Shown here: in pieces, positions 17,324-19,386 of the stretch
Layout of the letters: each line of letters starts with the position of its first letter
Numbering within the stretch: the stretch's first letter is position 1
IMG/VR virus record: IMGVR_UViG_3300009370_001221
Coordinates: 1-64,000 of that record
Length of the DNA: 64,000 nt
Strand: one strand, 5' to 3'
The notes under the pieces: model-generated
Database searches by the model: none
Told to the model about the DNA's origin: nothing
Seen by the model: only the letters and a program-made list of their open reading frames with translations
Program-made: the position numbers and the translations under genes

Positions 17324-17905
17324 TTGCTACCTAAATTGAATAACTTTTTCATTGACCCTGATATTTGCTTTGACGTGAGCAAATTACAGGATGCATTGCG
17401 CGAAGTTGATTCGCGAGTCGCAAGACAATCTCCTTTAGGCAAAAGAGACATCAATGCTATTTGTCTGACACAAATTCCCGGTGATCCAAACTCTATCACA
17501 GGTGGTAATGTAAGAGGATTATTTTGGACACGCCCAACAAGCAGTGGTGAAGAGGTCCAACGAGAAAATCCAATAGACGAATCCCAATATACTGAGTTTG
17601 TTAAACTATTTGAAGATACTTACTTCAAAGAAGTATACGATACACTTATTCCCAATTATAAATTAGGCAGAGTAAGATTGCTTTGGAAAATGCCACGCAC
17701 AACATTGAGTTGGCACAGGGATCCTGAACGCAGATTACACATACCTATCGTAACCAACCCAGGCGCACTAATGATTATTGATGATGAAGTAAAACATATG
17801 CCCGCAGATGGCAAAGTATGGATTACTGATAATACAAAATATCATAATGCGTTTAACGGAGGCGAGGAAGATCGCGTCCATTTAGTTGCTACAGTTATAG
17901 AATAA
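17324..17905 (+). CDS. Asp/Asn beta-hydroxylase-like oxygenase
   Basis: WHRD, RLHIPIVTN and HNAFNGGEEDRVHLV. Confidence 0.8.
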   Translation: MLPKLNNFFIDPDICFDVSKLQDALREVDSRVARQSPLGKRDINAICLTQIPGDPNSITGGNVRGLFWTRPTSSGEEVQRENPIDESQYTEFVKLFEDTYFKEVYDTLIPNYKLGRVRLLWKMPRTTLSWHRDPERRLHIPIVTNPGALMIIDDEVKHMPADGKVWITDNTKYHNAFNGGEEDRVHLVATVIE

Positions 17906-17936
17906 GGAAAGGCCCTAAACGGGCCCTTCCAAAAAA
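17906..17936. terminator. GC hairpin between the convergent oxygenase and tmRNA units
   Basis: GGAAAGGCCC-TAAAC-GGGCCCTTCC followed by A6. Confidence 0.55.
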
Positions 17937-18114
17937 GCAGATTGGGTAACAAGGTATGCTCTATACCCCGGAATACTGCCGTGATTAAGCGGCTAATGCG
18001 TATTCGTAATAATCGTCGTTTGCAATTATTTTAGTTTGCTGTTTTTTAACATGGAACTGCTCCCATGTGTCGTCCGTATATCGTCCTCACCCTGTCGAAG
18101 CCATGTCACCCCCG

Positions 18115-18258
18115 TCAAAAAAAGATTAAGTATACTATACCACCAATAATAATTATGTCGGCACAGATACTCCATGCGACATATATTTTAAACATATATT
18201 CTATAGCTTTCCTGAAAGGCCTTGGTAATGTTTTTATCTTGTTCCGGAGGAATCGCAT
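18115..18258 (-). CDS. 47-aa basic/transmembrane peptide inside the tmRNA intervening segment
   Basis: AGGAGG-8nt-ATG; MRFLRNKIKTLPRPFRKAIEYMFKIYVAWSICADIIIIGGIVYLIFF*; stop codon ends 1 nt before tmRNA G1. Confidence 0.65.
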   Translation of the reverse strand: MRFLRNKIKTLPRPFRKAIEYMFKIYVAWSICADIIIIGGIVYLIFF

Positions 18259-18292
18259 CGTCGCTTCCTCCTATCAATGTATTATAGTTCAT
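18188..18292 (-). CDS. Possible 34-aa ORF in the tmRNA intervening segment
   Basis: AAGGAGA RBS right after CCA; MNYNTLIGGSDDAIPPEQDKNITKAFQESYRIYV*; overlaps the 47-aa ORF out of frame. Confidence 0.35.
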   Translation of the reverse strand: MNYNTLIGGSDDAIPPEQDKNITKAFQESYRIYV

Positions 18293-18372
18293 TTTAATCT
18301 CCTTTTGGTGGAGGTGGTGGGGATCGAACCCACGTCCAGAATGCATATTGTCTACATCATACGACAATAAAG

Positions 18373-18546
18373 TTACTTACTTATTTTCTTTTCTTCATAT
18401 AAAACATGTTTGCGTACAACTGGGTCATACTTTTTTAATTTAAGTTTATTGCCACCCATCTTTCTTTTATTAACGGTTGTGGTATAATAATGCCCGGTAC
18501 CAGCAGTTGATACTAATTTAATAATTGTAATATTTTTACTTGCCAT
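18373..18546 (-). CDS. rpmG: 50S ribosomal protein bL33 (zinc-independent form)
   Basis: Hand translation: [57 protein letters not shown], with IKLVSxAGTGHxYTT and [10 protein letters not shown] signatures; TAATG overlap with the upstream gene; absent from ORF track (57 aa). Confidence 0.95.
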
Positions 18547-18890
18547 TACCATGCATCCTTAAATTGTGGTTTAGCGAAATTATCATTTTCTATAACATGT
18601 TCTTTTACTTCTTCTTTATCACCATAAGATATATTTTGCGGTGGCACATCTACAGAACTTCCTGTAGTATAAAATCTTGATGCTGTTTGTACATCATCAA
18701 AACTTTGTGATTTTTGTCCCATTGCTTTATCGAAAATGTCTTTATAGTCATTATAAATTTCCATATAGCTAGAAGGACCATATTTTTTCTCGGCCTCATC
18801 TGTGACAAACTTAACATACTCTGATGCTAAAGTCAAATCACCACCTGCTAATTTAAGACATTCTAATCTTATATGTGTTGAATCAATCAT
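18546..18890 (-). CDS. Hypothetical protein
   Basis: [10 protein letters not shown]-terminal motif; translationally coupled on both sides. Confidence 0.6.
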
Positions 18891-19048
18891 TCTTCGCCTT
18901 TAAATAGTGTCCATGCACCATAAATTATTGCGCCCCAGGCCGCCCACTTAACCAGTGGTGAAAATAAGAGGCATACTACACCAACAGCGACTAATACGCC
19001 GCCATCCCATGATGATCTTTCTGCCCATCGTGCTTTTAAATAGTCCAT
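18887..19048 (-). CDS. 53-aa two-helix membrane protein
   Basis: AGGAGA RBS; [53 protein letters not shown]; ATGA overlap; not in ORF track. Confidence 0.7.
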   Translation of the reverse strand: MDYLKARWAERSSWDGGVLVAVGVVCLLFSPLVKWAAWGAIIYGAWTLFKGEE

Positions 19049-19083: not shown

Positions 19084-19386
19084 TTAATTATCTGCTTCTA
19101 TTTTTACTTGTAACGGGTAATTATTGTTACGAGATAGTACAGTGGTTTCAATACCTTTTTGTTCTGCTATTTCATACGGCAATACTGCTACTATAGCAAA
19201 CCCTTCTTGATGTATTTTATGTGTCAAATCTTGTGCGGCATCAATGGCATGCATAAAAATAGACATTAAACAATTTACAACAAAATCCATTGGTGTAACA
19301 TCATCATTAATAAAAACTACCTTATACAAAGGTGGTTCTTTTAACTTTAAATTTTCTTCTATTTTAGTTGCAGTATCTGACATCAT
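19084..19386 (-). CDS. clpS: ATP-dependent Clp protease adaptor ClpS
   Basis: PPLYKVVFINDDVTPMDFVV...IHQEG...YEIAEQK...YPLQ. Confidence 0.95.
   Translation of the reverse strand: MMSDTATKIEENLKLKEPPLYKVVFINDDVTPMDFVVNCLMSIFMHAIDAAQDLTHKIHQEGFAIVAVLPYEIAEQKGIETTVLSRNNNYPLQVKIEADN

Follow-up and report, generated by a model that had tools for sequence, protein, structure and literature searches.

A leader frame and a 47-residue membrane-peptide gene nested in the intervening segment of a permuted tmRNA gene of a T4-like marine phage

The stretch of DNA analysed here (the window) comprises 64,000 nucleotides (nt), positions 1 to 64,000 of IMG/VR virus record IMGVR_UViG_3300009370_001221. It carries on its minus strand a permuted transfer-messenger RNA (tmRNA) gene, the two pieces of which are separated by an intervening segment (IVS). 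This IVS harbors a conserved open reading frame (ORF), ORF47, encoding a 47-amino-acid (aa) peptide with one predicted transmembrane helix, and a second, 34-aa frame (ORF34) that overlaps its start. Both probably belong to a self-contained cassette of leader and peptide nested in the IVS, doubly locked by RNA structure and sharing its transcript and one helix with the tmRNA. Profile searches and locus comparisons show that the peptide belongs, by its sequence, to a large phage family usually encoded at exactly this site of the tmRNA gene. The elements of the locus are as follows.

18258..18115, minus strand: ORF47, 47-aa peptide with a basic N-terminus and a C-terminal transmembrane helix (coding statistics, homologs, AlphaFold)
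18117-18115, minus strand: TGA stop codon of ORF47, followed by a single C before G1
18114..18305, minus strand: IVS, 192 nt between CCA and G1, expected to be lacking from the mature two-piece tmRNA
18306..18366, minus strand: acceptor piece of the tmRNA, with the 3' half of the tRNA-like domain, the T-arm, the acceptor 3' strand and the encoded CCA (Rfam RF04321/RF01850 alignment)
18308-18306, minus strand: encoded CCA (minus-strand reading)
17903..18113, minus strand: coding piece of the tmRNA, with G1, the acceptor 5' strand, the tag frame and the 3' domain (Rfam and sequence)
18113, minus strand: G1 of the coding piece
18114..18117, minus strand: UGAC leader tetranucleotide opposite ACCA, which supplies the stop codon; the RNase P cut is expected after 18114
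18023..17985, minus strand: tag frame ANDDYYEYALAA followed by its stop codon (sequence reading)
17930-17906, minus strand: terminator hairpin at the end of the coding piece

ORF47 has the makings of a translated gene. The motif GGAGGAA stands 6 nt upstream of its ATG. The N-terminal half of the peptide bears a net charge of +7, while residues ~25-47 (the 23 C-terminal residues) are hydrophobic; the AlphaFold model displays helices at residues 3-10 and 13-46, with a pLDDT above 90 in the membrane part. An ATG-initiated ORF of at least 47 codons occurs in only 47 of 5000 dinucleotide shuffles of the IVS, and a chance origin is ruled out because the frame is conserved in relatives. The IVS is identical in seven IMG/VR contigs, and single-protein locus searches returned identical copies only; a word-based protein search yielded two diverged homologs. 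The contigs of these homologs, together with a degenerate DNA scan of metagenomes, provided nine distinct IVS variants of the window clade, with diverged copies in loci L126-L128 and L136-L143. They also provided L129, a distant T4-like TARA phage with a tmRNA scoring as alpha-type and a 159-nt IVS, in which a 39-aa homolog again stops 1 nt before G1.

Within the window clade, 14 of the 144 sites of ORF47 vary, as compared to 23 of 131 in the tmRNA coding piece, making ORF47 the less variable of the two; in the acceptor piece, 3 of 61 sites vary. Eight of the nine isolated single-nucleotide polymorphisms (SNPs) in ORF47 fall at codon position 3 (our own binomial estimate is ~0.001), and the other changes include an F15A/A18F swap. 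Compared to L129, the C-terminal 26 codons show nine synonymous codon changes, among them a three-base switch between the serine codons AGT and TCA, and four conservative replacements, giving a ratio of nonsynonymous to synonymous substitution rates (dN/dS) of 0.12, while every other frame on both strands contains stops. The internal Met22 is rejected as sole start, as codons 7-13 change synonymously only, which indicates that the full 47 aa are under selection. A 101-aa antisense ORF (18065-18370, plus strand) spanning the IVS and the acceptor piece is likewise rejected: it is not conserved, and its homologous frames in L129 have stops. By its substitution pattern, ORF47 is thus shown to be a real gene under purifying selection. 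A preliminary description of the locus, made from the letters of the window, had proposed that the spacer is protein-coding and that its 47-aa product is a basic peptide with one transmembrane helix, the stop of which abuts the predicted RNase P site. The codon-periodic conservation in relatives bears out the former, the latter is recovered as a conserved, predicted single-helix membrane peptide, and the comparison of related phage IVSs that it had called for finds ORF47 kept, at the above dN/dS.

The peptide is widespread. A profile search of 1.84 billion representative sequences identified 53 protein clusters at E<=1e-3, sharing the core [ML]F[KR]xY[IV]xWS[IV]CAD...G[GS]GI.YLIFF. Y26 and D34 are invariant in the family and S30, A33 and G40 nearly so; Y26, S30 and D34 lie on one helix face (spacing i, i+4, i+8). 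Several of the gene calls (P0005, P0006, P0015, P0025, P0049) run on into plain 5'-end sequence of the tmRNA. Relatives of the peptide are encoded by 209 IMG/VR viral contigs. Among 83 loci examined, ~68 have the gene inside the IVS of a permuted tmRNA, the IVS being 157-304 nt long, and in nearly all of these ~68 the stop codon lies 1 nt before G1. In one locus (L167) the gene is found directly upstream of a whole tmRNA, and in ~11 it is free-standing. In ordinary 3' contexts, the free-standing homologs are conserved as well. In contig L152, as compared to its sister L153, exactly the 56-nt acceptor piece is gone and a decayed trace of the tmRNA 5' end is left, while leader, hairpin and peptide are retained. 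A peptide kept where the tmRNA is lost is selected for its own sake, and together with the free-standing homologs this indicates that it does not depend on a tmRNA in cis. As far as gene content tells, these loci show that the peptide works on its own, independently of the tmRNA.

In Pfam, PHROGs and the ESM Atlas, no family or named cluster was found for ORF47 (the best Pfam/PHROGs hit, DUF2542 at E=0.011, is below threshold) and no family for ORF34. Neither the tmRNA locus nor the L129 tmRNA has a BLASTN match in GenBank phages. The TBLASTN search with ORF47 that the preliminary description had advised found nothing in GenBank phages, nor did one with the peptide of the alpha clade; both results may be due to the shortness and hydrophobicity of the queries and to the low-complexity filter. 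Contigs of bacteria and archaea, taken as one genome per species, gave three matches on contigs of metagenome-assembled genomes: one in the phage IVS form, one free-standing, and one dubious match of 24 residues. The peptide was not found in the tmRNA genes of the scanned bacterial and archaeal species genomes, a scan with the sensitivity of one exact peptide pattern.

The neighbors of the peptide gene are often RNA- or nucleotide-related early genes. In L153 (3400-3520), the tmRNA is followed by a gene whose N-terminal sequence looks, by eye, like that of a cold-shock (CspA-like) protein, and the free-standing peptide genes of L151 and L154 are followed by a MazG-like gene, also by eye. The manA RNA motif (RF01745) lies directly downstream of the tmRNA in L167 (1813-1987, 72 bits) and L156 (3307-3515, 66 bits), and a glutamine riboswitch has been reported 3' of the tmRNA of Methylophilales phage Melnitz (PMC9004378). 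At the tmRNA of the window, no manA-type or riboswitch element is found.

ORF34 behaves, as judged from its conservation pattern, as a leader ORF. A GGAG located 4-7 nt after the CCA forms its Shine-Dalgarno sequence (SD), and an ATG or GTG occurs 11-16 nt after the CCA; in 32 of 43 distinct IVSs, this codon opens an ORF that passes the start of the peptide gene, always in one and the same frame relative to it. A start codon at nt 11-16 is also present in most of the other IVSs, six of which have a second GTG in that frame. The distance from leader start to peptide ATG is 25-49 nt and always 1 mod 3. The sequence itself is not kept. No other stretch of the locus varies as much as the part belonging to ORF34 alone, in which 13 of 34 sites differ and a 3-nt indel occurs. 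SNPs without effect on the ORF47 product hit first codon positions of ORF34; one of them introduces a TAG nonsense codon in L136. Being hypervariable, with an indel and a nonsense variant, ORF34 is rejected as a conserved protein; with position and frame kept and sequence not, it is best viewed as a regulatory leader. Of the 34-aa ORF with a ribosome-binding site directly after the CCA put forward in the preliminary description, the SD, start and frame hold up across relatives, but not the protein sequence, and the ribosome-binding site, present as described, also serves as one strand of a helix closing the IVS. The corresponding elements, again in the window, are listed here.

18188..18292, minus strand: leader ORF (ORF34), overlapping the ORF47 start in another frame (conserved start and frame)
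18294..18305, minus strand: 5' strand of the closing stem, AAAGGAGAUUAA, containing the leader SD GGAG at 18302-18299 (fold and covariation)
18118..18129, minus strand: 3' strand of the closing stem, UUAAUCUUUUUU, which doubles as the L-I-F-F codons of the ORF47 C-terminus (fold and covariation)
18265..18271, minus strand: ORF47 SD, GGAGGAA, 5' arm of the SD-masking hairpin (fold)
18246..18252, minus strand: anti-SD UUCCUCC (ORF47 codons 3-5), which forms the 3' arm of the hairpin; the loop holds the start codon (fold)

Minimum-free-energy and centroid folds both predict a 12-base-pair closing stem between IVS nt 1-12 and nt 177-188, with UGAC unpaired opposite ACCA; the z-score of the fold is ~ -2.6, and the L129 IVS is predicted to fold likewise with a closing stem. 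Pairs 2-11 are kept in 28-30 of 30 distinct combinations of IVS ends, with compensatory changes at pair 9 (U-A, U-G, C-G) and pair 12 (A-U, G-C), and the stem is conserved across tmRNAs scoring as alpha-type and as beta-type. The hairpin masking the SD of the peptide gene is predicted in 44 of 49 distinct contexts, free-standing genes included, and its arms covary (e.g., GGGGGUA/UACCUCC and UAGAGGG/CCCUCUA). A T4-type late promoter inside this hairpin was considered and rejected, not being conserved in the alignment inspected by eye. Counted over 41 distinct IVSs, the last four nt read UGAU 31 times, UGAC nine times and UUGA once. UGAU or UGAC also precedes G1 in plain hairpin IVSs, in Melnitz and in the non-coding IVS of L167. 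The ORF47 stop codon therefore reuses an existing leader motif, and its 1-nt spacing from G1 need not reflect any coupling to the tmRNA.

The junction shows one further peculiarity (18120-18087, minus strand). The peptide gene ends in U7 followed by UGA-C, which we take to resemble the CUU-UGA-C +1 shift site of the RF2 gene prfB. The +1 frame (GAC-GGG-GGU...) reaches a UGA at 18089-18087 (minus strand) and is open beyond it to the tag stop. Gene call P0006 is exactly the +1 fusion ending in ANDDYYEYALAA, and could be a homopolymer error or a call made with an alternative code.

RNA data are available from assembled metatranscriptome contigs. In run X4, coverage is found at the tmRNA locus only: a 151-nt contig of depth 20 covers 17967-18113 and ends exactly at G1, and a 201-nt contig of depth 4.2 (18369-18169) comprises the acceptor piece, the CCA and 137 nt of the IVS, with the start of ORF47 among them. 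One contig of X6 extends across G1 and has a V42I variant. The contig ends fit an RNase P cut at the predicted site and a longer-lived intermediate of acceptor piece plus IVS. The excision of the IVS during maturation, taken as established in the preliminary description, agrees with the contig ending at G1. In L129, L153 and L167, a sigma-70-type TTGACA/TATAAT pair is recognized by eye just upstream of the acceptor piece.

Functionally, the nested cassette might work as follows. It would be transcribed as part of the tmRNA precursor. Pairing between the two ends of the IVS would prolong the acceptor stem by a closing helix in which the leader SD is buried, and a second hairpin would bury the peptide SD against codons 3-5. 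With both SDs buried, ribosome loading would be largely confined to the growing transcript, as long as the closing stem still lacks its 3' strand. Ribosomes translating the leader may then pass through the hairpin and open it, permitting a short and limited round of peptide synthesis, similar to the action of mok on hok. RNase P cleavage 1 nt after the stop, then 3' maturation at the CCA, would free the mini-mRNA from the two tmRNA pieces. The product, a putative tail-anchored inner-membrane peptide of 47 aa, would work independently within the host membrane, via the conserved polar stripe Y26-S30-D34 on one helix face. As a guess, its likely role is that of an effector directed at the host early on, similar to a toxin or an exclusion protein, the dose of which would have to be kept low.

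Some points weigh against this explanation. The free-standing copies imply that placement in the IVS is not required. The last four codons of ORF47 are also constrained by the closing stem, hence part of the conservation is at the RNA level. Conservation of the leader frame could partly reflect descent, although the indel pattern argues otherwise. ORF47 matches no characterised family, which makes the membrane role a guess. Translation of ORF47 is deduced from its sequence, leader coupling and the co-transcriptional window are inferred from the architecture, and what is known of the RNA stems from assembled contigs and not from read ends. Overall, the comparisons above show the coding status and placement of ORF47, and we infer the RNA gating from predicted structure and covariation. 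Peptide and tmRNA have a transcript and one helix in common; a regulatory link between them, and a functional coupling of the peptide to tmRNA maturation, are hypothetical.

The tmRNA gene itself is well defined. The Rfam model of permuted tmRNA (RF04321, tmRNA_permuted) scores 119.7 bits at 18366..17985 (minus strand; threshold 47) and the beta_tmRNA model (RF01850) 99.6 bits at 18417..17903 (minus strand; threshold 84). The acceptor piece lies 5' of the coding piece and the covariance-model match is above the curated threshold, as expected of a permuted two-piece tmRNA. ARAGORN also calls a permuted tmRNA at the locus, with a wrong tag; it gives the correct tag, ANDDYYEYALAA, on the relative L126, and the tag is also called on L128. 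The tag frame (18023-17985, minus strand) ends in a hydrophobic degron of the ALAA type. A second ARAGORN "tmRNA" (18306-18845, minus strand) with a 33-aa "tag" is a false positive overlapping the bL33 gene and a 114-aa gene.

The window stems from a T4-like marine myovirus encoding a class II ribonucleotide reductase, DnaB and a DUF6267 protein. Among the matches listed for the latter, Phage C48C1 is the best (41.6%), followed by Melnitz (40%), then by cyanomyoviruses and HTVC008M. Of the matching IMG/VR contigs, one is 235 kb long. Upstream of the tmRNA lies the following cluster.

18373-18552, minus strand: bL33 gene (PF00471, 1.7e-14)
18546-18890, minus strand: gene of a 114-aa protein of unknown function
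18887-19048, minus strand: gene of a 53-aa hydrophobic protein of unknown function
19084-19386, minus strand: ClpS gene (PF02617, 2.5e-24)

Together with the tmRNA, these genes form a translation and proteolysis quality-control module. The order of the bL33-ClpS-tmRNA cluster is also found in L126.

Besides the ORF47 family, phage IVSs display a diversity of other contents. Those below ~90 nt are plain hairpins. In L048 (3266-3706), L066 (2905-3345) and L075 (1581-2021), all on the minus strand, an ORF for a 146-aa SNase-family nuclease (PF00565, phrog_452) fills an IVS of 454-455 nt, with an SD ~5 nt after the CCA and a stop 1-2 nt ahead of G1. The nuclease sequence is conserved among copies that have diverged. 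Unrelated hydrophobic ORFs of 26-41 aa, starting 11-12 nt after the CCA, are found in L027/L117 (IVS of 138 nt), L072 (92 nt), L089/L102 (95 nt), L064 and L119; those of L027/L117, L072 and L089/L102 have their TGA 1 nt before G1, and the ORF is kept between L027 and L117 while 45 of 138 nt of the IVS differ. In a different clade of permuted phage tmRNAs, comprising L044 (6456-6757) and also L010, L011, L012, L073, L090 and L095, one frame has no stop over the whole acceptor piece and the IVS (101, 125, 140 or 170 nt, all 2 mod 3) and extends 57-75 nt into the coding piece. Its IVS part is conserved at the amino-acid level (..YYTPxEWSRSIGWGTVPDERN..), and 86 protein clusters match the ORF (P0056-P0141). 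Members of this class lack a stop ahead of G1, and some of them also an obvious start; after RNase P cleavage, its message would be a natural non-stop message. The Melnitz genome (MZ577097.1; L227:2126-2302, with the tmRNA at 2026-2478 of the locus) has a ~140-nt IVS with its own closing stem and an unannotated ORF with an SD for a basic peptide (54 aa from the first ATG, 58 aa as listed), which is unrelated to ORF47 and reads through G1 into the tmRNA body. Lastly, the 237-nt IVS of L060 holds a second element resembling a T-arm and acceptor (GGTTCGAATCCACC...CTCCACCA), perhaps a tRNA-like piece that was duplicated, or else a tRNA nested in the IVS.

Two-piece permuted tmRNA genes were reportedly described by Keiler in 2000 and by Sharkady and Williams in 2004, and are said to occur in Alpha- and Betaproteobacteria, cyanobacteria and marine myophages. 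The present gene shares with them an acceptor piece placed first and an encoded CCA, and presumably also cuts at G1 and after the CCA and a discarded IVS. It differs in that the IVS, treated as a spacer in the published cases, is here a conserved protein-coding cassette. Two-piece tmRNA genes are already known in Melnitz (PMC9004378) and in pelagimyophages. The Melnitz paper describes phage two-piece tmRNAs, leaves the IVS undiscussed and does not use the word "intervening". Among bacterial IVSs, one with a tRNA-Ala gene and one with a repeat element have been reported (tmRNA database, 2025, PMC11915505), and that paper mentions only these two as IVS contents. A full-text literature search found nothing on ORFs in IVSs.

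Three other explanations have been considered. Coupling of the peptide gene to trans-translation is unlikely in our opinion. According to it, the ORF47 message cut by RNase P becomes a substrate of tmRNA-SmpB, and the IVS serves as a sensor or timer that ties tmRNA maturation to the dose of peptide. The mRNA would end 1 nt past the UGA, 4 nt beyond the P site, and tmRNA-SmpB would compete there with release factor RF2. The stop would also soon be removed by 3' exonucleases. Stable peptide would come only from unprocessed precursor or under saturated trans-translation; conversely, ribosomes completing ORF47 on the precursor would unwind the closing helix and the acceptor helix and slow maturation down. 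A stop located 1 nt from G1 in ~60 diverse loci, and again in the unrelated IVS peptides of L027/L117 and L072/L089/L102, is in line with such coupling, as are the efficiency of trans-translation with <=9 nt downstream of the P site (PMC8012679), the X4 contig of acceptor piece plus IVS lacking the IVS 3' end, and the ClpS and bL33 genes nearby. The L044 class and the Melnitz ORF, without a stop before G1, would even yield a true non-stop mRNA upon cleavage. However, UGAU precedes G1 in non-coding IVSs too, so that the spacing may be inherited geometry; moreover, the free-standing homologs are conserved with ordinary 3' contexts, and the L167 gene lies upstream of the whole tmRNA. The broader claim that long phage IVSs are mini-cistrons wired to trans-translation, with the RNase P cut leaving a message whose stop lies at its 3' end or is lacking, the tmRNA tagging or releasing the membrane peptide of its own spacer, and ribosome traffic gating tmRNA folding and maturation, is less likely still; if true, these mini-cistrons would give the phage an inherent sensor or timer for ribosome-rescue capacity in the course of infection.

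Alternatively, the IVS could be a permissive, well-transcribed, intron-like slot that small genes enter by drift or insertion, and the cassette a passenger mechanistically unrelated to the tmRNA, the overlaps reflecting compaction. This view is favored by the unrelated cargo of the same slot, namely the 146-aa nuclease of the SNase family and no fewer than three further small hydrophobic peptides, and also by the tRNA gene and repeat element of bacterial IVSs (PMC11915505) and by the copies of the cassette that are free-standing or upstream of the tmRNA. Yet the closing helix, made of the leader SD and the C-terminal codons, is conserved with compensatory changes across tmRNAs scoring as alpha-type and beta-type, a pattern better matched by long co-evolution than by a recent insertion, and the strong excess of IVS locations (~80%) would call for an explanation; a mere passenger is, in our estimate, rather improbable. 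Finally, the IVS might be kept as a scaffold for RNA processing or folding, with its ORFs as by-products and no peptide made. The closing stem and the hairpin are indeed conserved RNA structures, and the fold z-score of ~ -2.6 is in agreement with this idea. It is nonetheless hardly credible, considering that the substitutions are codon-periodic and synonymous, including the three-base serine codon switch, that in relatives stops interrupt both the alternative frames and the antisense strand, that the peptide is retained where the tmRNA is lost, and that the invariant residues of the family are spaced i, i+4, i+8. The leader and peptide cassette, RNA-locked within the tmRNA gene, stays the explanation we favor.

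This cassette resembles several known systems. With hok/mok/sok it shares a ~50-aa peptide with a single transmembrane helix, an overlapping leader ORF (mok is needed to open the masked SD of the toxin; a leader role is proposed here), a 5'-3' fold-back pairing that keeps the full-length RNA translationally inert (here by prediction), and a translatability altered by RNA processing (here proposed). In contrast, ORF47 has no sequence similarity to Hok or to any Pfam toxin family, its topology is reversed, with the basic N-terminus inside and the transmembrane helix at the C-terminus, and the RNA ends would come from tRNA-processing enzymes. As for type I toxins in general, ORF47 is by its model a small hydrophobic single-helix membrane peptide; the masked SD, the overlapping leader ORF and the fold-back rely on structure prediction and covariation, and no membership in a known toxin family was found in Pfam, PHROGs or the Atlas. 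A holin or lysis cassette is not recognized, as the neighbors are bL33, ClpS and a hydroxylase, and the ORF47 C-terminus, LIFF, has no charged tail, contrary to a holin. Nor does ORF47 resemble a homing endonuclease: it has no nuclease domain, and the SNase domain is found only in unrelated IVSs such as those of L048 and L075.

With the tRNA punctuation of mitochondrial transcripts and of bacterial tRNA-mRNA co-transcripts such as tyrT-tpr, the locus has in common an mRNA located between tRNA-like structures and, here presumably, freed by RNase P and 3' processing, with a stop codon abutting the 5' end of a tRNA-like element; here, however, the flanks are halves of one permuted tRNA-like domain, pairing across the mRNA. 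In T4 early transcripts, SD-occlusion hairpins silence genes e, soc and I-TevI on one transcript class. The present hairpin likewise pairs an SD with nearby sequence in T4-like phages, but no conserved internal late promoter is present and activation is proposed to occur via translation of the leader ORF. Group I introns of tmRNA genes can carry homing-endonuclease genes (PMC11915505), and thus also place protein-coding cargo within a segment removed from the mature tmRNA. In the window, this cargo is a 47-aa membrane peptide instead of a nuclease, and tRNA-type processing would take the place of self-splicing. A closer parallel to intron-borne homing endonucleases is offered by the IVSs with an SNase gene (L048, L066, L075).

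Two-piece tmRNA genes have been studied since 2000, and their IVS treated as disposable. The present analysis shows that the IVSs of marine T4-like phages commonly encode conserved small proteins, the excised spacer being a recurrent site for small genes. As annotation pipelines for tmRNAs mask the IVS as RNA, such genes are systematically missed, and the widespread family of 26-60-aa membrane peptides represents overlooked small genes in abundant ocean phages. A single RNA helix appears to be at once a tRNA-processing scaffold, a mask of a ribosome-binding site and a coding sequence. The locus thereby offers a testable system for the competition of translation with the maturation of a structured RNA, and for whether or not a viral membrane effector is coupled to ribosome rescue.

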